Virus record (IMG/VR): IMGVR_UViG_3300031957_002643
Coordinates: 124,001-188,000 of that record
DNA: 64,000 nt
Strand: one strand, 5' to 3'
Made by a program: the position numbers and the translations under genes. This document shows positions 2,163 to 59,952 of the stretch, in pieces; within the stretch, counting starts at the first letter, position 1, and each line of letters starts with the position of its first letter. Below the pieces are notes generated by a model. The model did no database searches. It was not told the DNA's origin and worked only from the letters and a program-made list of their open reading frames with translations.

Positions 2163-2708
2163 TTAGTCCTTATTTTTGGGGAATTTCCGATTGATCACCG
2201 TGAGCGCTTCCGGGCAATTCCGTTCCAAAGATGTTTCCACGCTGGCATAAAAGGCCTTCATGAAATTCGAAATGTATTGAATGATCGCTGCCTTGTCGCA
2301 TCCATTTGGAATGAGGAAATCATCCCCGTTTTCAGTCAAATGCACATACTTGAACATGTGCATGAACGGATCAGCGTCCAGTACATCACGGAGGCATTCA
2401 TGTTCAATTTGATATCGAACAGCACACGCTTGAATCTCACGCTGACGCGGAGTTCGAGGAAAGCTGATGATTTTGCCAGATTGGTGATTCGGAAATGACC
2501 CGCTCTCTTTCAGGTCATTCATACCTGTCAGAACCATTTCGGTTTGCTTCGCGTCCATGCGAGCCATATTCAACAGTTGAACCAGCCACTTCGTATCATC
2601 ATCAAGGTCACAATAGCGGTCCATGGTATAGTGATTGTACCGAATACAATCACGATTGTGTTCACCGTTGGTATTTTTACAGTGAGGGCACTGATCTTCA
2701 TACGACAT
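2163..2708 (-). CDS. Hypothetical protein
   Basis: ORF preceded by the repeated promoter/SD cassette. Confidence 0.75.
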   Translation of the reverse strand: MSYEDQCPHCKNTNGEHNRDCIRYNHYTMDRYCDLDDDTKWLVQLLNMARMDAKQTEMVLTGMNDLKESGSFPNHQSGKIISFPRTPRQREIQACAVRYQIEHECLRDVLDADPFMHMFKYVHLTENGDDFLIPNGCDKAAIIQYISNFMKAFYASVETSLERNCPEALTVINRKFPKNKD

Positions 2709-2764
2709 AATGTTCTCTCCCGTTGAACAATAACTGTTATATACGGAAGAAATACAGTTGTCAA
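2706..2764 (-). repeat. Dispersed ~59-bp sigma70 promoter plus SD cassette, copy 1 (others at 24209..24267, 25832..25890 and variant 37577..37630)
   Basis: TTGACAACTGTATTTCTTCCGTATATAACAGTTATTGTTCAACGGGAGAGAACATTATG, near-identical in three places. Confidence 0.9.
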
Positions 2765-2914
2765 TCTAAATTAATGACTGCCGATACCAGTCAGTTACTA
2801 CTCGCTGCTTATCAGCATGACCGCAACCAAGGTGCTGCTCGGGTCCAAGGAACGAATTCCTCTTGATCTTTAACGACCATGGGACATATGCATGGTCAGG
2901 GATATTTATATGAC

Positions 2915-2944
2915 AAAGCCCCAAGGCTTTCGCCAAGGGGCTTT
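2915..2944. terminator. Hairpin terminator downstream of the tmRNA
   Basis: AAAGCCCC...GGGGCTTT stem with an internal hairpin, flanked by A/T runs. Confidence 0.7.
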
Positions 2945-3237
2945 TTCTGTTTCGAGGGTTGTCAGACCCCAAGTGGCTTACGCAGCGATGCGAGCCTCAA
3001 CGGCAAAATCATTATCATTTGCAGTTATTTAAGTTGTGCCTATAACGGGCCACACCCGGCAATCTCAACTTCGCTAATACACACCCATCGATCCTATTTC
3101 GCCCCCATCAGCAGCACATACTGTCGCCATGTTCGCTACGCCGGTCATGACCAAACCTTAAAGTATGTGCTGTTGGTGGAGGCGTCGGGTACTGCCCCCG
3201 AGTCTGGTCTGCTGTTCGCTCCGCATCATCAATTACA
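2945..3237 (-). ncRNA. ssrA: Permuted two-piece tmRNA (alphaproteobacterial type), tag ANDNDFAVEARIAA
   Basis: Acceptor piece ending GACTCGGGGGCAGTACCCGACGCCTCCACCA (CCA at 3174) comes first, then an intervening 11-bp hairpin, then the coding piece starting GGGGGCGAAATAGGATCGA (3106). Tag frame 3022..2978. TTGACA-17-TATAAG promoter at 3272..3244. Confidence 0.95.
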
Positions 3238-3268
3238 AATATACTTATAAGGGTTACCGATTCAAATG

Positions 3269-3555
3269 TCAACCGGTTTTTTGCTTATTGTCAGAATTTC
3301 TTCCAATATGGTATCCATCACAAAATAAGCACTTGTAGTTGCTGTAATAGTAGCCGTACTTTTTCTGCATTTTTTGTGCAGCCTTAGTGGCAGATTTCTT
3401 GCTTCCATAGGCAATCTTTGGCTGACCATTCGCATTTTCATGAGAGCGCCTACTACGAAGGCCTCGCATGTGACCTTTGCGCAGATTTCTCAAAAAGCGA
3501 GTTAAGGGGCCTTGGTCCAAAACAACCAGCCAGAGGTTTCTAAGTTTAATCATGT
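3269..3555 (-). CDS. Small basic hypothetical protein with C-x2-C..H motif (start approximate)
   Basis: C-terminal part of track ORF 3269..3742, YKCLFCDGYHIG. Confidence 0.55.
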
Positions 3556-3692
3556 GTCTACTTACTGCATTAGTATAATACCAAAACAACAAAGCCCCCA
3601 TTGGGGGCTTTGTCATTGACACAGCACATGTGTGCCGTGGCAGAGCGGTCATTTTACATTTAATAGATAAATGTGCGGATGTCAACCCGATA

Positions 3693-4037
3693 TCAAAATA
3701 AATCTGGTTCTTCGTAGTCGTTTGGCACAAATACATATTCAATGCCAGAGTGAACTAGATAATAGACCCGGTAGCCATGAAGCCTACTGGTGGCATATTT
3801 CACATGCCAATCATCTTTCATTTCAAATTCAAACCGAGAATAACCCAAATCTTTTTCGATTTCTTCATAATTGTCTAAGCCCACGAATTGAATAAATTGT
3901 TCTCGTGAAATTTCATCAGACATATCTATCATGTCTGATAGACCACCATCGCTATCAACATCATGATGATTCCAGTTCACACAGTTGCTATAATATTGAA
4001 ATCGGTGTTCATTCAAAAGAATTGAGAGTTTCATCAA
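3693..4037 (-). CDS. Hypothetical protein
   Basis: ORF track, overlaps the stop of 4034..4630. Confidence 0.7.
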   Translation of the reverse strand: MMKLSILLNEHRFQYYSNCVNWNHHDVDSDGGLSDMIDMSDEISREQFIQFVGLDNYEEIEKDLGYSRFEFEMKDDWHVKYATSRLHGYRVYYLVHSGIEYVFVPNDYEEPDLF

Positions 4038-21011: not shown

Positions 21012-21958
21012 TGAAGAAGCCCTCAGACACAAGGTCCAAGGGCTTCTAAAGCTTGGCCACATGCTATCCTTACAGACCCGCATGTACTCTTTTGAAAGCC
21101 TGAGATTAAGGCTTCTAACGATGACCTTTGGACCGCACCGAAGCCCTTGCGAGGCTTGTTAATCCGTTATCCACAAATTGGTGTCACCACTCAACTTGTA
21201 TTCACCAGTGCTGCCTTTTTTGAGGTGTGGCCTTTCACCTGTCACGCTGTGCTATTCGTCAGACTTTGATCCACCTGCCTTGCGAGCAGTTCGAGGTTGC
21301 AGCCCCTATGAACTCCGTTCTAACAATCATCTTTGGCTTGCGGCCTCCGATGAACCCTGTTCCTTACTAGGCAGGGTATTAAGCACTTTTCACACAACGC
21401 CGAACCAGTCTTTGCGTTTTATCTTCTGAGAAGGGGTTGAACCTTCGACAGATCGCTTTGAATGCGATTGCTCTACCACTGAGCTATCAGTAACCTACCT
21501 CGATGTGCTGGTCCTGTTGCTTCGCTACCTGTTGGTAACAAAATACAACACACCGACTGTCGTTCACCCGCTAAGGCTAATAAACCAAACTTCTGGATTA
21601 GTCATCACCACCAAAGTGATGCCGTCACCCATTGTTTTGCGAACCGCCCTTACCCGCTAAGGCTCGAACCTGTCCACTATCCGTTAACCATCACATTCAA
21701 CCGTTTAGCATGTGAATCTGCGGGTGCTAACCGCACAGGTCTCGGTGTTACCCAAACCTTCATCACCGGTCTTACTGCTTAGCGCATCCATGGCTGAATA
21801 CGCGCCCTAATAGGCTTGGCTCGGACTTGTATAGCTGAACCATTGCTGGCGCGAGTATGTAGGAATTCCCGCTTTGGGCTGGTTACCCAGCTTATTCTTA
21901 ATGGACGCTATACCGCCCAAACTCTTATTTCATTTCCCAGTGGCCGTAACCACATCGT
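21012..21958 (-). ncRNA. Large structured ncRNA, GOLLD-like, with an embedded tRNA-like domain
   Basis: ~950 nt without a credible ORF; TTTACA-17-TATATA promoter at 21994..21966; many minus-strand hairpins with GTAA/GCAA loops; 3' hairpin at about 21016..21046. Confidence 0.65.
21422..21493 (-). tRNA. tRNA-like element with UCA (opal-reading) anticodon; imperfect acceptor stem, no CCA
   Basis: TA-GCTC-AGTGGTA-GAGC, ATCGC-ATTCAAA-GCGAT, GAAGG-TTCAACC-CCTTC. Confidence 0.75.
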
Positions 21959-26165: not shown

Positions 26166-26260
26166 TGGCTCCCATCTGAGGTATCGAACCTCACCCGCGT
26201 CTCATCAACGCAGACCTCCGGTTAACAGCCGGGTACCTTCACCGTGCCAGTCCGATGGGA
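26166..26260 (-). tRNA. trnN: tRNA-Asn(GTT) with long variable arm
   Basis: CCCGG-CTGTTAA-CCGGA, ~24-nt variable region, 7-bp acceptor, GCCA. Confidence 0.8.
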
Positions 26261-26261
26261 A

Positions 26262-26345
26262 TGGTGGGTAGAGTGAGAGTCGAACTCACGGGGCTTGCGC
26301 ATCGGTTTTACAGACCGCTCCCGCCCCCTACGGGACTACCTACCC
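26262..26345 (-). tRNA. trnY: tRNA-Tyr(GTA)
   Basis: GCGGT-CTGTAAA-ACCGA, variable arm, CCA. Confidence 0.92.
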
Positions 26346-35663: not shown

Positions 35664-36686
35664 TCATCCTGCCAACTTATTCGGAATTACTGCTTGGCCA
35701 TGCATCCAGTGCTTGACTGTCTGAACATGATCCTTCCGAACGAACTTTGCAACCTTTTTTCTGAATTCACCGTAGTAAAAAGAATCGGTGACGCGAACCA
35801 GATATCCTTCACTGATTCCCCAACGATCCTCATCCCAAAGCTTCTTGATTAGCTTTTCGTCCCATGGGCCACGATAAATGACATCAACCGGAGTGATTCC
35901 AAGAAGCTGAAACCATTCCAAGGTCTCATCCCACGAAAGGCACATGTTGCGATCATCCCAAACCGAGAAACCGGTAAAGTATGATTTTAATTCTTCATAT
36001 TCGATAGAATGCTGGGCATAGAGGTTTTCACCACAAACGCGCCAGAACTCAGGAATTTCATGGGCAATCTGAGACCAAAAGTTTTTCATCCAATCACGGG
36101 AAGGATGATGGCGGCTATCAACCGAACGAGCATGAATGTGATCGGAATACATCGTGGTATTCTCACCATCCATCTTTTCAGTGATCACGACTTCCTTTCC
36201 AATGAAGCCCTCAAGCGAATCAATCACACGATCATCATCATGGATGTTTTCAGACCAAGGCAAATGAGGGGTGCGCGGGTATTTCACCCAATGTGTGAAA
36301 TCCTTAAGGACATTGCCGCGTTCCAACACCTTTTGAACAGATGGGTCATAGAACAGTTCTCCTCGCAGGCGAGTGCCATTTGGCATGACCGGATTGCCCC
36401 ATTTGTCGTAGACATGATCGTCATACAGATGAGGAGGAACAATGATCTTAGTAATACCACAGGCAAGACGAACGTCTTCGACCGAAATTTCGGTGGTCTC
36501 GCATTGCATATGGTGATCGGCGCAAACCGATGCGCCATTTTCCAGATAGTATCCACCATCCGGCCAAAGGCGACGTTCTATGATATGATGAGCATCCTGA
36601 GCGGGCTTTGAACAGAAGACACACTGATGCCCATCGCGTTCAAAGACACGTTCTCTGAATTCATCTCTGGACAACAGTTTAAACAT
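35664..36686 (-). CDS. HNH domain plus RNA ligase (Rnl2-like) fusion
   Basis: N-terminal VFERDGHQCVFC..AHHI..NGASVC; C-terminal KYPRTPHLPWS, TEKMDGEN, GENLY, EGYLVR, KFVR. Confidence 0.85.
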   Translation of the reverse strand: MFKLLSRDEFRERVFERDGHQCVFCSKPAQDAHHIIERRLWPDGGYYLENGASVCADHHMQCETTEISVEDVRLACGITKIIVPPHLYDDHVYDKWGNPVMPNGTRLRGELFYDPSVQKVLERGNVLKDFTHWVKYPRTPHLPWSENIHDDDRVIDSLEGFIGKEVVITEKMDGENTTMYSDHIHARSVDSRHHPSRDWMKNFWSQIAHEIPEFWRVCGENLYAQHSIEYEELKSYFTGFSVWDDRNMCLSWDETLEWFQLLGITPVDVIYRGPWDEKLIKKLWDEDRWGISEGYLVRVTDSFYYGEFRKKVAKFVRKDHVQTVKHWMHGQAVIPNKLAG

Positions 36687-37099
36687 TTCATTTTGCCTTC
36701 TCGTACTGAACCACCTTACTGATTTTATCATAGATGTCAATCAGAATCGGCTCATTGGCACCTTCCAATTTTTCCAACAGTCGTTCCATTTCTTCCATAG
36801 TCAGGTCGAGACGAGGAACAATGACAACGGGTTTTAGTCGTGCTCTGATTTCCTGCCGTTCCCGATAGTTGGGACGATATTTATACAGACGCGAATACAC
36901 CGCAAACTGTCGTTGCATGATTTCCATAGGGTGCGTAATGCCACGAAAACGGCAACGTTCGGCAACCTTTTGATCAATGATGGATTTATCACTACCGAGT
37001 TTTCGGTTGCCATCCATGAACAGTTGGTCATTCGAAGTGATATATCCTTCTTTCGATTTGAAGGGATTTCGCTTCTGGTTACCTTGATGTTCGAAATGA

Positions 37100-37579
37100 C
37101 TACCCATGTACCGTCCCCCCATAAGCAAGACGATTGTAGATGTCTTCCAGCTTCGCCTCATCGTCGAGACGCAGTTCGTAGCACGGGAAAGGCTTCATAT
37201 TGAACCCACGACGATCAACGACATCCACATCTGACCACTTCGAACCAAAAACTTCGAACTCATCGTTCAGGTACGACAGAATAGTAGTGATGCGTTGCTG
37301 GCCGTCGATCAGCCATTGATCGGTCTTACCATCGATCTGAGAAGAACGATTGTACACGAAGGATGCAATCGGCAGACCAAGCCACAGGCTTTCGATCAGA
37401 CGAATACGCTGCTTCATTGTCCATACAGCCGGGCGCTGGAATTTCGGAAGAACGAAGCGTCCAAGAATACGCTCACCATCAGCCAGTTCACTATGGAGAT
37501 CGCGTTCCATAGCAATAAAACTGATGCAGGTAGACATAGCACTACCAGACATGATTTCAGTTGGCATCTTGTTGGTCAT
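37100..37579 (-). CDS. DUF262 (ParB-like/GmrS-type) domain protein
   Basis: PKFQRPAVW, LIESLWLGLPI, LIDGQQRITT. Confidence 0.85.
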   Translation of the reverse strand: MTNKMPTEIMSGSAMSTCISFIAMERDLHSELADGERILGRFVLPKFQRPAVWTMKQRIRLIESLWLGLPIASFVYNRSSQIDGKTDQWLIDGQQRITTILSYLNDEFEVFGSKWSDVDVVDRRGFNMKPFPCYELRLDDEAKLEDIYNRLAYGGTVHG

Positions 37580-37636
37580 ACTTCTCTCCCGTGTTATATT
37601 CTTTATACACGGGAGAGAAGTATTTGTCAAGTATTA

Positions 37637-38260
37637 TTATCGAGTAACTTCAATGTTACCCGGCTCATCTCTCATGTTATTCAATTGAACTCTAATGTTT
37701 CTCAAAAATGCCGCAGTATTCATTTTAAATTTGAACAATCCACGAATGGCACCAATGACAAAAGCCATACCCCAAATGAGTTTTAGTGACATCGCAAGAT
37801 CGTTGCCTTCAAGTTGAAAAACTTCTACCGCATGCTGTGCAGCACTAGCTCCAACCGTTGCAACAAGAAATGGCCGAAAAGCAGCATCGATAAATTCTTC
37901 ATCGATATTATCTTTTCTGTGATATCCAGCAATAGCTGCCGGAATAGCGGAAGCAAAATTCACACCAAGATCGAAAATTTTAAGTGCTGCTTCTGGTAAT
38001 TTCAGCGTGCTAACTAGGATACTAATCGCTGTGTCTTTTATAGAGCCTTCAGTAATCGTTGATTCCGATTGCATACCAAGAAAGTCTCTGATCGCCCCAA
38101 TTACCTTCTTGAAAAACGTTTCATCTTTTGGAAGACCAGCAAGTTCGTGCATTTCAGCTTTTACATTTTCTTCCATACGATGAAGAAAATCATCCCATTT
38201 AGCATCGCTTTGGGATTCAAACAAAATATCGTTTAATTGTTTTGGGGTAATGTAAGACAC
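37637..38260 (-). CDS. Hypothetical, possibly membrane/virion protein
   Basis: ORF with ATAAATA upstream; ILFES and ITEGS motifs. Confidence 0.7.
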   Translation of the reverse strand: MSYITPKQLNDILFESQSDAKWDDFLHRMEENVKAEMHELAGLPKDETFFKKVIGAIRDFLGMQSESTITEGSIKDTAISILVSTLKLPEAALKIFDLGVNFASAIPAAIAGYHRKDNIDEEFIDAAFRPFLVATVGASAAQHAVEVFQLEGNDLAMSLKLIWGMAFVIGAIRGLFKFKMNTAAFLRNIRVQLNNMRDEPGNIEVTR

Positions 38261-38305
38261 AAATATCTCCTTGGTTAAGAGATATTTATCTCAATTATGA
38301 AATTT

Positions 38306-38391
38306 TGGTGCGGCTGGGGAGACTCGAACTCCCACGGGATTGCTCCCACTGCCCCCTCAAGACAGCGCGTCTACCATTCCGCCACAGCCGC
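38306..38391 (-). tRNA. trnL: tRNA-Leu(GAG)
   Basis: CTGTC-TTGAGGG-GGCAG, long variable arm, ACCA. Confidence 0.93.
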
Positions 38392-38412
38392 ACAGGGTAT
38401 TTCTATTTAGAG

Positions 38413-38492
38413 TGCAATTGGAAGGACTCGAACCTTCACGGGGTCTATCCCACAGCCGTCGCTGCGCGTCTACCAGTTTCCGCCACAATTGC
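38413..38492 (-). ncRNA. tRNA-Leu-like RNA whose anticodon arm is reduced to a 4-bp stem with a GACG tetraloop
   Basis: Perfect 7-bp acceptor GCAATTG/CAATTGC, Leu-type D arm, variable arm and T arm, A73, no CCA. Confidence 0.8.
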
Positions 38493-38497
38493 AAAAA

Positions 38498-38890
38498 TTA
38501 TTCTTCGTCCTTGACCTTGAACAATGGAGTTCTTGGTTCACCACTCAGCGTGTCATTATGAATAGCTTGAAGGAAACGATCCAGAAGGACAATACCAAGG
38601 TCTTCAAACAGGACATCACGGTTGGACTGTTTCCATACAACGCCTGTGCCTTTGGCCAAGGAACGCATAGCATTGTAATCTGGTTTGATTCCATTCTTGT
38701 GATAGGCCACATACGCATTCTGGAAGAGACGCCAATCTTCTGCCGCCGAATCAACTGCCTTGCCAGTCTTCGGCAAATACGAATTTACCAGATTGACATC
38801 ATCACGGCGAAAGCCTTTAACGAGAGTATCAGTTACCATTTCGAACTCCATATTCTTGATGAGAATATATCGTCTATATTGGATTGTCAA
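38498..38890 (-). CDS. Hypothetical protein
   Basis: ORF track (true start probably the internal Met). Confidence 0.6.
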   Translation of the reverse strand: MTIQYRRYILIKNMEFEMVTDTLVKGFRRDDVNLVNSYLPKTGKAVDSAAEDWRLFQNAYVAYHKNGIKPDYNAMRSLAKGTGVVWKQSNRDVLFEDLGIVLLDRFLQAIHNDTLSGEPRTPLFKVKDEE

Positions 38891-38902
38891 TCTATAAAAT
38901 GA

Positions 38903-38933
38903 AAAAGGACCGCTACAACTCAGCGATCCTTTT
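38903..38933 (-). terminator. Intrinsic terminator
   Basis: AAAAGGATCGCT-GAGTTGT-AGCGGTCCTTTTT. Confidence 0.75.
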
Positions 38934-39143
38934 CCGGTTAGATGTGCTTCCGACTCTGTTGGTTAGTGCTGGTATGCGTCAGCCAGAGCCTTGGAAATCT
39001 TGGGTGCATACTCCTATCTAAGCTAAATCATTGAGTTGATCTTCGCTACGTCATGGGTTCCACCTTCCTCATTTAATCCTATCTAGCCTTCCACAAAAAC
39101 TTTTTCTTTTCTAAATCTACAAAGGGGGCTTAAACTAGTCCAA

Positions 39144-39270
39144 TTTGGGTTCCTGCCTTTCTTTTAGCGAACATTAGACACAGGGGGTTTTCAAAAAATC
39201 AAGAGGTCTACAAGTGGGGGTTATCTTACTGCAATTTGGGTTCCTACCTTTCTTTCGGCGATAATTAGAC
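39144..39270. repeat. Two ~39-bp direct repeats, plus a partial third copy near 39054
   Basis: CAATTTGGGTTCCTGCCTTTCTTTTAGCGAACATTAGAC versus CAATTTGGGTTCCTACCTTTCTTTCGGCGATAATTAGAC. Confidence 0.8.
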
Positions 39271-39721
39271 GACAAACTTAGTTGGGGACAATGTTTTATG
39301 TTCCCCGTCAACACTGATGAATATATACGTCTTTACTAGAAAGTCAACTAGCAATTTCATTTGTAATGTTTTGGTAATGTTGGATAGATCGAACCGGACG
39401 ACTTACGGGGTTTTTCTTTGCCCTGCGCCCGGTTCTGGTTTCGCCGCCTTCGATCACGTTCATCGTTAGAAGCGTATGCCTATCAGATGTAGAACCACTA
39501 CTTTTATAAGGCGGGTTTGTAGCCTGCCTCGTCGGGGTCCAAATTCTCCCGCCCGGTTTTTCTATTGAACCGGATAACATTCAGAATGAACTGCAATTTT
39601 TACATCCCTCGGTTCCCTGATCTGGAGCGATGGTCTTGAACTCCATGGTTGGTGATGTTCAGCGGACAGATTATTTATATGATATTGATTTTTGAGTGTC
39701 AACGATGAAAATCAATCATCG

Positions 39722-39946
39722 TCAGTTTTTCATAGCGAACTGGCCAATTGTTGTAATTTCGTTTTGGCTTTTTTTAATGCTATGTGTTGCGGAATGCATA
39801 TAATGACCAAGTGCTCGAATCATATCGTCATGCGTTCCTAGATGTTTCTCTTCACCGTTGACGGTCATGTGATATTCTGACCCAAGACAAAGAACCTTGA
39901 TTGGACCATACGGAGAATCAACTTCAATAATGGTATCGTAATTCAT
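39722..39946 (-). CDS. Hypothetical protein
   Basis: ORF track. Confidence 0.6.
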   Translation of the reverse strand: MNYDTIIEVDSPYGPIKVLCLGSEYHMTVNGEEKHLGTHDDMIRALGHYMHSATHSIKKSQNEITTIGQFAMKN

Positions 39947-39974
39947 GATATTTTAAACTCCGTTGTTTTGAATC

Positions 39975-40298
39975 TTAAGTCTTCTTTGATCCATTTATGA
40001 TGATATCACGTTCTTTCTTGATCTGTTCTATATGTTTGCGTAATTCATCAGTAGCATCATTAAATTTTTTTTGTGCAGCATAAAAATCTCGTGCGGCTTC
40101 CAAATGATTCAACATAAGTCGGAAATTTTCCCAATAGTCTTCAGGAGCTTCTTCCTTAATCAACTTGTCAACATCTTCACGATTAGACACGCTGATGGTA
40201 AACGACCGTGTGTTAATTGTGAAGCTGCCATCTTTTTCAACTTTGACTTCAAAATCGTTGTTTTTCGCAATCAACGAATTTGCATTGTTGAGTTCCAT
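39975..40298 (-). CDS. Hypothetical protein
   Basis: ORF in operon. Confidence 0.65.
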   Translation of the reverse strand: MELNNANSLIAKNNDFEVKVEKDGSFTINTRSFTISVSNREDVDKLIKEEAPEDYWENFRLMLNHLEAARDFYAAQKKFNDATDELRKHIEQIKKERDIIINGSKKT

Positions 40299-40300
40299 GA

Positions 40301-41101
40301 TTAGTCCTTTGAAAATTGAGGCGACTCACGATCAAAGATGACTTCAACAGGATTTGTCAATTCCATAAAGCGATCTGTCGCCCAAGTCATCATCTGCGAG
40401 CGCGTGAAGGTTTCACCCGGATTAGGACGCTTCTTTTCAGGAATGCGAGAAATCTCTTCAATAGTCAATTCGCGCTGAACCAGATCACGAGTGATGAATG
40501 CACCATAACGGTATCGCATAGGAAGAGCAGAATAATCATATTCGGCATCTTCCATCATTTGGAGCATTTCGCGAGTACTGCAATTTTGAAGTTTGCTGTG
40601 ACCAAACACCGAATGAGCAGCAGACGTGATCGCATTGCGTCGGGCATCCAGATAGCGCCACCGAAGCATGTTCACAGCCTCCCATTTATCAGGAACACTG
40701 AGAACACGTGCATCAAAGTGGGGCAACCGATGGCAATACGGTTCCCAATTCTTGATGAGAGAGAACAACTTTGCAGTTGTCATCGACGCCAGCACAGAAT
40801 TGAGCTTGTGACTCTTTGCATCAAACAACATTTGAGCATTATCACCATCGACAAACCATACCAAGCTGATTTCATCGGATTGGGTATAACCGATGACTGC
40901 ATTGGTGGCTTCCACCAAATACTTGGTAGTGTCGATCATGGCTTGTGACAGCCGAGCATCGAACGGACGATCCATACCTCTGGTGAATTTGGAGAAAGAT
41001 CGGCCATCGATCCGTGCATAGATCGGGCGATCAGTCGGAAGGCGTCTACCGGTTTCATGAACCTCGTAGTTCTTCATCCGGTTTCCAAGATCGTCTTTCA
41101 T
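40301..41101 (-). CDS. thg1: tRNA-His guanylyltransferase Thg1-like protein
   Basis: RMKNYE, YARIDGRSFSKFT, GYTQSDEIS, FDAR, WRYLDARRN. Confidence 0.93.
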   Translation of the reverse strand: MKDDLGNRMKNYEVHETGRRLPTDRPIYARIDGRSFSKFTRGMDRPFDARLSQAMIDTTKYLVEATNAVIGYTQSDEISLVWFVDGDNAQMLFDAKSHKLNSVLASMTTAKLFSLIKNWEPYCHRLPHFDARVLSVPDKWEAVNMLRWRYLDARRNAITSAAHSVFGHSKLQNCSTREMLQMMEDAEYDYSALPMRYRYGAFITRDLVQRELTIEEISRIPEKKRPNPGETFTRSQMMTWATDRFMELTNPVEVIFDRESPQFSKD

Positions 41102-57497: not shown

Positions 57498-57998
57498 TTA
57501 GATCAACACAAAGCCTTTGTATGGCTTTCCGAGGATTTCGCAGGCTTTGTCGAAATCCTCCATCATGATCCCATTCTGAGAACTGGTCTGCACATGATGA
57601 TCTTCAACGCCCTTGACACTGGCATCGTCAATCACACACCAATGCGTGATGTTCTCATGATACTCATCACGAAGCATTTTTAAGTGCTTGTGAATTGCAT
57701 CACCGCGATCATCGCAACCCGGATAAGTCGTGACCCATTCGGGGTACAGGTCTTCAGAGATATCATATCCAACACGCATGAAGCGATCACGAATATGATC
57801 TTCTCCGTATGCACCATGTGTGGAATTGATAACGACCTTACAACCAGTCCATTCACAAATGGTGCGAACTGCATGACAGGCGGACTGGTCGAAGAACTCC
57901 ATGAACGAACCTGCTTCGTGATGCATCTCTGAAGGAAGCCACAACAGATTTCGACCAGTGTTCACAACACCATCGATATCCAAAAACAAAATTTTCAT
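57498..57998 (-). CDS. HAD-family phosphatase (Swiss-army-knife RNA repair HAD type)
   Basis: ILFLDIDGVVN, VINST, CVIDD. Confidence 0.85.
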   Translation of the reverse strand: MKILFLDIDGVVNTGRNLLWLPSEMHHEAGSFMEFFDQSACHAVRTICEWTGCKVVINSTHGAYGEDHIRDRFMRVGYDISEDLYPEWVTTYPGCDDRGDAIHKHLKMLRDEYHENITHWCVIDDASVKGVEDHHVQTSSQNGIMMEDFDKACEILGKPYKGFVLI

Positions 57999-58119
57999 AC
58001 ACATAACTCCATGTAACTCATATTACACGGAAAATATGAATGTGTCAATACTGTTGACAATCAAATTAAAACCTGATATACAGTGTTCATTGTCAAGTTC
58101 ATACATGGAAAGGAACTTT

Positions 58120-59658: not shown

Positions 59659-59952
59659 GTGGGTGTGGCGAAATGGTAGACGCGACAGACTTATAGTGAT
59701 TGAGTGCTCTCTTAGAAATAGGAGATGTAGAACTGCTCAAATTCGGGGAAACCTGTAAAATGGCAATCCCGAGCCAAGCTTTCCTGAAAAGGATTGAAGG
59801 TGTAGAGACTAGACGGGCAGCATCTAAGTTGGGAAACCAATATGATGAAGGGATAGTCCAGACTACAAACCGTAATGGGCAGCGAAAGCTGTAGTTAGTA
59901 CGAAAATCTGTTTCCTTATGGAGTGGGGGTTCGAGTCCCCCCACCCACACCA
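59659..59952 (+). tRNA. trnL: tRNA-Leu(TAA), interrupted (exons 59659..59692 and 59903..59952)
   Basis: Spliced anticodon arm ACAGA-CTTAAAA-TCTGT; acceptor GTGGGTG/CACCCAC; ACCA. Confidence 0.95.
59693..59902 (+). mobile_element. Group I intron (IC3/trnL-type), 210 nt, no ORF
   Basis: 5' exon ends in U and intron ends in G; core elements AATTCGGGGAAACC, AATCCCGAGC, GTAGAGACTAGA, GAAGGGATAGTCC. Confidence 0.93.

Follow-up and report, generated by a model that had tools for sequence, protein, structure and literature searches.

The tRNA genes carried by phages are usually explained by codon supply or by escape from tRNA-cutting host enzymes, and tRNA-like RNAs that do not decode are already known as a kind. 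The tRNA-like domain of transfer-messenger RNA (tmRNA), YrlA (RF02553), mascRNA and the t-elements of plant mitochondria are all tRNA-shaped without a working anticodon and are handled by tRNA-processing enzymes. We present here an 80-nucleotide (nt) gene that fits neither of the usual explanations. It lies on the minus strand at 38413..38492 of a 64,000-nt stretch of viral DNA (the window), which corresponds to bases 124001-188000 of a complete, terminally redundant jumbo phage genome of 335,552 bp from seawater (IMG/VR), and it has the form of a tRNA-Leu in which the anticodon arm is replaced by a short hairpin with a GACG loop. The same design was found in the cultured Erythrobacter phage vB_EliS-L02 (EliS-L02) and, judging from the two sequences, we lean towards regarding the element as a tRNA-Leu-derived, non-decoding look-alike that is held there by selection.

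The tRNA-like RNAs mentioned above differ from the element in that they have no complete D arm or belong to longer RNAs; moreover, mascRNA and the t-elements are eukaryotic or organellar, and tmRNA has alanine identity and a reading frame. Comparable in their setting are T4 species 1 RNA (rnaC) and species 2 RNA (rnaD), which are also small stable RNAs within a phage tRNA cluster, the former ending in a canonical T arm, GGGUUCGAAUCCC. However, they are 139 and 119 nt long, have unrelated cores and show neither a Leu-type D arm, nor a cloverleaf, nor a GACG hairpin, and no sequence or structure homology of the element to either of them was found beyond the generic T arm. Comparable in form are the minimalist laboratory tRNA-Leu molecules without anticodon stem-loop that bacterial leucyl-tRNA synthetase (LeuRS) binds and charges in vitro, namely an A. 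aeolicus deletion mutant (PMC2377443) and, reportedly, the constructs of Larkin et al. 2002 (PMC115294). Like the element, these constructs keep the acceptor, the elbow and A73 and have the anticodon arm removed, but they are man-made and carry CCA, whereas the element is natural, has no encoded CCA and bears a specific replacement hairpin. Finally, the tRNA pseudogenes of phage clusters are also tRNA-derived and have a lesion that abolishes decoding; in these, scattered mismatches and no recurrence are expected, whereas the element is otherwise perfect and its lesion recurs with a compensatory change. We found no published description of a natural phage gene with such a design, and no Rfam family for it beyond tRNA: although the kind of RNA is known, the phage GACG-arm tRNA-Leu design is new.

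An anticodon-less tRNA-Leu-like gene in two phages

Read base by base along 38492->38413 of the minus strand, to which all coordinates in this paragraph refer, the element is a tRNA-Leu-type cloverleaf with G1 at 38492 and A73 at 38413. The acceptor stem, GCAATTG/CAATTGC, has seven of seven Watson-Crick pairs and is followed by U8 and G9 and by a Leu-type D arm (38466..38483) with a 3-bp stem GCG/CGC, G13-A22, and a loop, AAACUGGUA, which contains G18 and G19 and is 1 nt larger than that of bacterial and other phage tRNA-Leu. Between G26 (38465) and U44 (38452), a 12-nt mini-arm, CAGC-GACG-GCUG (38453..38464, with the GACG loop at 38457-38460), stands in place of the 17-nt anticodon arm. There follow a long (class II) variable arm GGG-AUAGAC-CCC (38440..38451), a G and U48, and a T arm GAAGG-UUCGAGU-CCUUC (38421..38437) with all its five pairs and a canonical T loop. 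In the body as a whole, the 22 designed pairs, all the tertiary-core bases and A73 are intact. This agrees exactly with the original prediction, which had described these parts (acceptor, Leu-type D arm, variable arm, T arm, A73 and the arm CAGC-GACG-GCTG) at the same coordinates beside a tRNA-Leu(GAG) gene, and it confirms that the RNA is non-decoding: the cloverleaf, the 7-bp acceptor, the D and T arms and the core bases of a canonical tRNA are there, but a 4-bp stem with a GACG loop occupies the place of the 5-bp anticodon stem and the 7-nt loop with U33 and anticodon.

A local scan with the Rfam tRNA model (RF00005) recovered 38413-38492 on the minus strand with 38.5 bits (gathering score, 29; E = 7e-7), the anticodon loop region being modelled at 4 nt and not at 9. 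In the local Rfam scan at E <= 10 there was nothing else than noise below 19 bits and, in particular, no match to YrlA, the tmRNA domain, mascRNA or the t-elements. The element was called neither by ARAGORN nor by an Rfam scan of the 64 kb at gathering threshold, and such genes are missed by tRNA finders and annotators. When the entire 335-kb genome was screened strictly, with no mismatch allowed in the 7-bp acceptor or the 5-bp T stem and with TTCRANN required as loop, we obtained 36 known tRNAs, one shifted-register duplicate of a known tRNA-Thr, the element and one other candidate, so that the element is no chance match. The other candidate (genome 299642-299713, plus strand, outside the window) has a perfect acceptor (G-U pairs included) and T-arm helix and a non-tRNA core, is not called by ARAGORN and overlaps in part an 87-codon open frame. 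The minimum free energy fold of the element (-29.7 kcal/mol) contains the acceptor, the T arm and the mini-hairpin. The genome was assembled from a metagenome, and this is all that speaks for a normal tRNA-Leu gene distorted by assembly or sequencing. Contigs assembled separately from two DNA sequencing runs of the source study (19x and 121x depth) cover 37590-40000 with zero differences and with no variant having an intact anticodon, which shows that the truncated arm is real and not an assembly error, and a cultured phage genome has the same design, so that an artefact is exceedingly improbable.

That second member was disclosed by a BLAST search with the 80 nt of the element against cultured phages at a relaxed threshold. 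The search gave one long match, at 74600-74682 of EliS-L02 (OL955261.1; L365:1481-1563), a stretch that has no ARAGORN call, is unannotated in its record and is not mentioned in the paper describing the phage (PMC9127768). It is composed of an acceptor GCGGGGC/GCCCCGC, a Leu-type D arm with an enlarged, A-rich loop, G26, the arm CCGC-GACG-GCGG, U44, a long variable arm, a canonical T arm and A73, and is placed 6 nt after a tRNA-Leu(GAG) within a cluster of 20 tRNAs plus tmRNA. With a covariance model (R1) built from the window element alone, the EliS-L02 element scored 73.5 bits, compared with 68.6 for the tRNA-Leu(GAG) of the window. Both mimics present a tRNA-Leu body, G26, an arm of the form C-N-G-C/GACG/G-N'-G-G, U44, A73 and no encoded CCA. 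Over the whole length they are identical at 54 of 83 positions; the mini-arms differ at two positions that form one compensatory pair (A-U to C-G), the GACG loop is identical and all the stem differences are compensated. When the two mimics, a looser third element (L163, see below) and the window tRNA-Leu(GAG) were aligned for pair counts (n = 4), 98.9% of the cells were paired, with changes on both sides in 14 of 22 pairs and in three of the four pairs of the mini-arm, these counts leaning towards structure in that tRNA homologues were aligned to a model. None of 500 shuffles matched these values, and about 40% of the cells were paired when the partners were slid along the alignment.

The likeness between the two mimics extends from their common architecture (GACG on a 4-bp G/C-rich stem, G26, U44, class II variable arm and A73) to the enlarged D loop, the absence of a complete CCA, the position beside tRNA-Leu(GAG) in a cluster of tRNAs with tmRNA, and the carrier, a lytic phage of a marine alphaproteobacterium. 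In contrast, the acceptor, T-stem and variable-arm sequences are different, the EliS-L02 element is downstream and not upstream of tRNA-Leu(GAG), and its body is not of the Leu(GAG) type but related to the tRNA-Leu(CAA) of Erythrobacter phage XM05, a relative of EliS-L02. Furthermore, the carrier is a cultured, unrelated 150-kb CbK-like siphovirus that has only about 17 proteins in common with the window phage. The tRNA order in XM05 is the same as in EliS-L02 (Leu(CAG), Leu(GAG), X, Thr(CGU), His, Gln...), and the slot X is occupied in XM05 by a normal tRNA-Leu(CAA) with encoded CCA and the same acceptor, GCGGGGC. The orthologous tRNAs of these two phages are 69-100% identical, and the EliS-L02 mimic is 73% identical to that tRNA-Leu(CAA). 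The presence of a normal tRNA at this slot indicates that a decoding tRNA-Leu was the starting point of the mimic state. The EliS-L02 arm differs from that of XM05 in at least 6 of 12 nt and from that of the window element in 2. The shared arm would either have evolved twice or have been transferred as a unit into a different tRNA-Leu body, and random decay predicts neither a convergent nor a transferred arm. The original prediction had argued against random decay from the intact pairing and had proposed to seek the same tetraloop with covariation elsewhere; it is upheld on this point by its finding in EliS-L02.

The mimics also coincide in what follows A73. At the position of CCA, the window element has CUC (38410..38412, minus strand), whereas all the 43 ordinary tRNA genes of the window phage genome encode CCA; similarly, the EliS-L02 element has CCU after A73, in a cluster where 20/20 tRNAs encode CCA. 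In a relative of the window phage (G002), 15/15 tRNAs do so. Only one other tRNA-type gene of the window phage genome, embedded in a GOLLD RNA, is devoid of CCA and, this one aside, the mimic is the sole CCA-less gene of this type in the window phage and EliS-L02 genomes.

Origin of the mini-arm and scarcity of the design

A scan of metagenomes for the arm stem yielded at least 120 bacterial tRNA-Leu(GAG) genes reading G-CAGCG-UUGAGGU-CGCUG-U-GGG, with CCA encoded. Considering that the element has in common with them G26, the outer four stem pairs, U44 and the start of the variable arm, it can be described as a tRNA-Leu(GAG)-type gene with an arm that is 5 nt shorter. A simple 5-nt deletion was rejected as the origin of the arm, since no single deletion yields GACG and at least two further substitutions are needed. 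With respect to the bacterial type, three acceptor and two T-stem pairs differ, all of them still paired, and the D loop has one more base; in the loop remnant and CCA, at least four of seven sites have changed relative to the likely ancestor.

The derivation of the arm and the XM05 slot establish that the mimics come from tRNAs and have a lesion that disables decoding, and it could be that they are simply dead genes, that is, a duplicated or acquired tRNA-Leu losing anticodon and CCA, with the likeness between the window element and EliS-L02 resulting from a shared mutational route or from gene conversion between paralogues. The normal tRNA-Leu(CAA) at the XM05 slot means that the state is a loss, CCA has been lost too, other anticodon-truncated singletons occur in viral contigs at about 1 per 1000 tRNA genes, and neither the nearest relative nor 13 other alphaproteobacterial phages have the mimic. 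However, there is no decay elsewhere: the 22 pairs are without mismatch and every core base is intact despite the changes in at least four of the seven remnant and CCA sites. Moreover, the same 12-nt arm, with an identical loop and one compensatory change, recurs on two bodies of different origin, and both mimics have lost CCA and enlarged the D loop. A body that stays perfect while sites no longer needed for decoding or charging have changed favours selection and, together with the recurring arm and the shared loss of CCA and enlargement of the D loop, it is the reason why we prefer a selected derivative; a dying gene seems to us a rather unlikely explanation. Two other ideas were discarded: a remnant of an attP site, because complete 5' and 3' tRNA halves are present and both carriers look lytic, and an intron or recoding, because the element is shorter than a tRNA and not longer.

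Several results weigh against a selected derivative. A synteny search with the flanking open reading frames (ORFs) in IMG/VR, cultured phages and a set of 5.8 billion proteins disclosed no relatives beyond the genome itself, and the tail sheath, used as query, retrieved two overlapping IMG/VR contigs (G001 and G002) that are syntenic with the window phage at about 70% nucleotide identity and have the gene order Thg1-like, upstream-ORF homologue, DUF262. The sole homologue found of the ORF upstream of the element is in G002 and has no tRNA after it, and neither the element nor tRNA-Leu(GAG) was detected in this stretch with sensitive Rfam searches and our own covariance model. Conservation of the pair formed by the element and tRNA-Leu(GAG) does not, hence, extend to the closest relative known for the window phage. 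The clear members are only two, plus the looser L163 (L163:3699-3781), which has an arm ACGCU-GACG-AGCGU, A73 and no CCA and scores 53.9 bits. The census over collections consisted of exact motif scans, the covariance model being applied to selected genomes and not to whole collections: an IMG/VR-wide scan that required a Leu-type D arm, a correctly spaced GAC-R loop and a T loop yielded 15 hits with no further close (M-type) member, L163 apart, and the scan of 14 cultured alphaproteobacterial phage genomes with the model recovered EliS-L02 only, the other 13 (XM05, Lacusarx and 11 others) having just normal tRNA-Leu. The design is therefore not conserved among the close relatives of the carriers, being absent from G001/G002, XM05, Lacusarx and the 11 others. 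In addition, the fold of the element is just modestly better than that of shuffles (z = -1.95), the shared GACG loop was recognised after looking at the data and not beforehand, a search for RNA runs found none listed, and gene conversion could have spread the shared arm even if it is of no use. A comparison of gene contents in search of a protein partner gave weak leads only, from two genomes and with no statistical weight, namely the HAD_SAK_2 phosphatase and a GHKL ATPase gene pair, which are common to the window phage and EliS-L02 and not found in XM05. The original prediction had held that relatives with a normal anticodon loop or random decay, together with an RNA that is not expressed, would speak against it; this is borne out in part, by the normal tRNA-Leu at the XM05 slot and by the closest relative of the window phage, which is without the locus.

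The mini-arm motif (exact or degenerate DNA) had 0 matches in IMG/VR, the D-loop plus T-stem motif had 0 in metagenomes, and the acceptor motif matched one unrelated Clostridia tRNA-Leu only in GTDB genomes. A length-only motif for short tRNA-Leu was abandoned, as it retrieved mostly normal phage tRNA-Leu with short variable arms, and L179 was dismissed as a member for lack of a proper acceptor. The anticodon-truncated singletons cited above, counted in the viral DNA examined, have unrelated loops (L002, GCAA; L076, AAGA; L187, UGAU; L062; L013) and look like a background of sporadic lesions; a supposed family of L002 and L076 was given up when a targeted scan found no further members.

These scans also brought up other elements built on tRNA scaffolds. 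The L163 element sits in a tandem array of at least three of them (G005, about 57650-58100), which share a T arm (G/C)(U/C)AAGG-U(U/G)CAAAU-CCUU(A/G)C, one having an insertion in the D arm; the carrier is a complete 91-kb phage genome with 36% GC and one ordinary tRNA (Gln). Two related elements with a tRNA-Leu body (L174=L242 and L222=L240) have a short variable region and a 3-4-bp stem with a GACAA pentaloop, and their stems and acceptors covary. This GACAA loop is presumably the sequence of the boxB pentaloop of phage P22.

Tandem arrays of two to five elements on a tRNA-Leu scaffold were found in IMG/VR contigs L154 (about 2637-3860, minus strand), L068:3-899, L167:100-911, L175:6234-7066, L211:3514-4737, L196, L212, L191 and about 25 others. 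Their acceptor (AGTCAGG/CCTGACT), Leu-type D arm and T arm (ACAGG-TTCGAAT-CCTGT) hardly vary, most of them have A73 followed by C-N-A, and hypervariable cores of 20-105 nt replace the anticodon and variable arms. We counted 54 elements with 39 distinct cores at 34 loci, some of which abut large tRNA clusters. One type of core looks like an H-type pseudoknot with covarying stems (L139 compared with L189). Rfam gave only weak tRNA matches (38-44 bits) for these arrays, and no match was found in cultured phages. Both the AGTCAGG arrays and that of G005 resemble the window element in the Leu-type D arm, the T arm, the perfect acceptor, mostly A73, the absence of a proper CCA, the replacement of the anticodon/variable region and the location in or beside tRNA clusters. 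However, the AGTCAGG arrays have another acceptor and T arm, hypervariable cores and a tandem disposition, whereas the window element is single, retains its variable arm and bears a short, fixed hairpin; it is not a member of these arrays, from which it departs in acceptor, T arm and copy number.

Two more groups were noticed among phage genes of this type. Some tRNA-Leu genes have C at 33 instead of the universal U (L213, L162, L171, L188, L202, L214, L223, L194, L231 and L172) and look functional, with CCA, a normal cloverleaf and loops such as UCGAGAG or UCAAGAG. A family of 76-87-nt elements (L102/L066, L116/L070, L011, L065, L094, L063 and L053) encodes CCA and combines fully paired acceptor and T arms with the motifs CUUCUAA or CUACGAA and GUAACUGGA; they have no ARAGORN call and the order of their arms looks non-standard.

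Candidate roles of the element

The anticodon arm is not needed for the charging of tRNA-Leu by bacterial LeuRS, which uses it in editing (PMC2377443). For the Aquifex aeolicus enzyme, the affinity falls just 2.5-fold when the anticodon stem-loop is removed entirely, and the critical parts are A73 and the core made up of U8-A14, G18-U55 and G19-C56 (PMC2377443), which backs the premise of the original prediction that recognition by LeuRS is mainly independent of the anticodon. This core and A73 are all in the element and, as far as can be read from its bases, so is the whole known set of bacterial LeuRS determinants (A73, U8-A14, A15-U48, G18, G19, U55/C56 and the long variable arm). The prediction had gone on to propose a chargeable RNA serving as a leucine donor, an EF-Tu or LeuRS sponge or a nuclease decoy, and it is conceivable that, after CCA addition, the host LeuRS leucylates the RNA, which would then act as a non-ribosomal donor of leucine, for L/F-transferase or a similar enzyme, or as a LeuRS/EF-Tu sponge. 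L/F-transferase reads the acceptor stem and not the anticodon (PMC4105747), and the window phage encodes a protein of the CCA-adding-enzyme family. However, the lack of CCA in both copies, in genomes that otherwise always encode it (43/43 and 20/20 real tRNAs), argues against a leucine carrier; the acceptor has A3:U70, whereas the E. coli L/F-transferase prefers G3:C70 (PMC4105747). Furthermore, in the window phage genome we found no gene for L/F-transferase, FemAB, MprF-C or a class Ia synthetase (LeuRS included), and the D loop is enlarged in both mimics. The position of G18/G19 reportedly matters to the E. coli LeuRS, according to Asahara et al. Chargeability is thus not supported by these data, nor is a donor for L/F-transferase, and we consider a leucylated RNA of this kind very improbable.

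The location of the element, which starts 5 nt beyond the stop of the preceding ORF and lies 21 nt ahead of tRNA-Leu(GAG), on one strand and behind a promoter-like site, suggests another possibility, namely that it is a tRNA-shaped punctuation mark for RNase P and RNase Z which defines the 3' end of the upstream mRNA or aids the maturation of tRNA-Leu(GAG), the released RNA itself being without a role. The acceptor/T-arm helix and the elbow are all that RNase P needs. The tRNA-like t-elements of plant mitochondria are described as acting in this way (PMC1920247). However, the real tRNA 21 nt downstream would give the same cut, the EliS-L02 element is located between two tRNAs where no mRNA ends, and the conservation of the GACG arm, A73 and the variable arm is left unexplained, so that a mere processing signal is hardly probable.

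Coming back to a selected non-decoding derivative, the element would share a transcript with the upstream ORF and tRNA-Leu(GAG), from which RNase P and the enzymes of tRNA 3' processing would free an L-shaped RNA whose one leg is short. Since LeuRS charges without the anticodon arm and RNase P reads the acceptor/T helix and the elbow, this RNA should be processed and bound like a tRNA-Leu, and it would act through the tRNA-Leu body and the GACG loop and not by delivering leucine to the ribosome. Among the conceivable roles we favour that of a decoy or sponge, which a tRNA-Leu-recognising factor would bind and could neither use nor cut, the candidates being LeuRS and a tRNA-targeting host defence enzyme; this specific mechanism we put forward only tentatively. 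The GACG loop may be a contact point. The same tetraloop occurs on G/C-closed stems in the dimer/packaging signals of gamma- and alpharetroviruses and of Maedi-Visna virus, in which it mediates or modulates RNA-RNA dimer contacts (PMC516450), and an analogous contact role is a possible reason for its conservation in the mimics; the retroviral context is the leader RNA of eukaryotic viruses, and the comparison with the phage element is of loop sequence alone. Among genes of the tRNA-repair type, the window phage has those for an RNA ligase, a Thg1-like protein, a CCA-adding enzyme and HAD_SAK_2, and EliS-L02 encodes an RtcB-type ligase and a nucleotidyltransferase (PMC9127768); such genes in both phages suggest that their hosts attack tRNAs.

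More speculatively still, marine alphaproteobacterial phages might repeatedly convert a tRNA-Leu into a blunted, uncleavable and unchargeable stand-in that neutralises a host defence or toxin directed to tRNA-Leu or titrates LeuRS, possibly by loop-loop docking; on present evidence this generalisation is doubtful. If it were true, the mimics and the tRNA-Leu-scaffold arrays together would mark out tRNA-Leu as the scaffold that phage small RNAs favour, on account of a recognition that is independent of the anticodon. The element points, beyond codon supply and escape from cleavage, to a third use of phage tRNA genes as protein- or RNA-binding mimics. Since cultures exist of both EliS-L02 and its host, Erythrobacter litoralis DSM 8509, these ideas can be tested at the bench, and a natural anticodon-less tRNA-Leu represents a ready probe of LeuRS, RNase P, the CCA-adding enzyme and EF-Tu in cells.

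The locus and genome of the window phage

On the minus strand, the order of features around the element is a hairpin, a promoter-like site, an ORF, the element, a 21-nt spacer, tRNA-Leu(GAG), a 207-amino-acid ORF, DUF262/GmrSD_N and an HNH-RNA ligase. The terminator-like hairpin (38901..38935; 15 bp and a T run) ends the upstream unit, and a sigma-70-like match TTGACA-17-TATTCT (38862..38890), which is a consensus match only, could drive the upstream ORF, the element and tRNA-Leu. The upstream ORF (38498..38890; 113 amino acids in its database form, with a start near 38839) had no Pfam or PHROG match. The tRNA-Leu(GAG) at 38306..38391 looks functional, with encoded CCA, an ARAGORN call and 51.1 bits in Rfam. 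The 207-amino-acid ORF (37637..38260) starts 45 nt after it and received no functional assignment from family searches. It is followed by the DUF262/GmrSD_N protein (37100-37630) and by the RNA ligase, which has an N-terminal HNH-like region (35664-36740). A Thg1-like 3'-5' polymerase (40301-41101, minus strand like all the above) is encoded 1.8 kb upstream of the element, and the CCA-adding-enzyme family protein and a HAD_SAK_2 "Swiss Army Knife" RNA-repair phosphatase are found at genome positions 268034-268396 and 252522-253073, respectively.

The window phage genome contains 44 tRNA genes plus a two-piece alpha-type tmRNA, and its tail sheath is about 38% identical to those of the jumbo phages Atu_ph07, RaK2 and PA5oct. 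The permuted tmRNA (window 2887-3276, minus strand) has the tag ANDNDFAVEARIAA; EliS-L02 and G002 also have one, and its type points to an alphaproteobacterial host. The GOLLD RNA (window 21097-21556, minus strand; 177 bits in Rfam) embeds a tRNA-like gene (21422-21493, minus strand) with anticodon UCA and no CCA, and another tRNA of suppressor type (anticodon CUA) is encoded beyond the window (genome 254867-254942). A tRNA-Asn(GUU) of unusual length (95 nt; window 26166-26260, minus strand) stands beside a normal copy, and a tRNA-Tyr (26262-26341, minus strand) reaches just 31 bits in Rfam. A group I intron match (window 59691-59875, plus strand) scored 50.8 bits, right at the gathering score. 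Finally, a stretch of about 45 nt at the junction of the 207-amino-acid ORF and the DUF262 gene (window, about 37584-37630) is also matched, with two to three differences, at the ends of or inside other contigs assembled for this phage, and it is probably a repeated intergenic motif that breaks Logan assemblies at this point.

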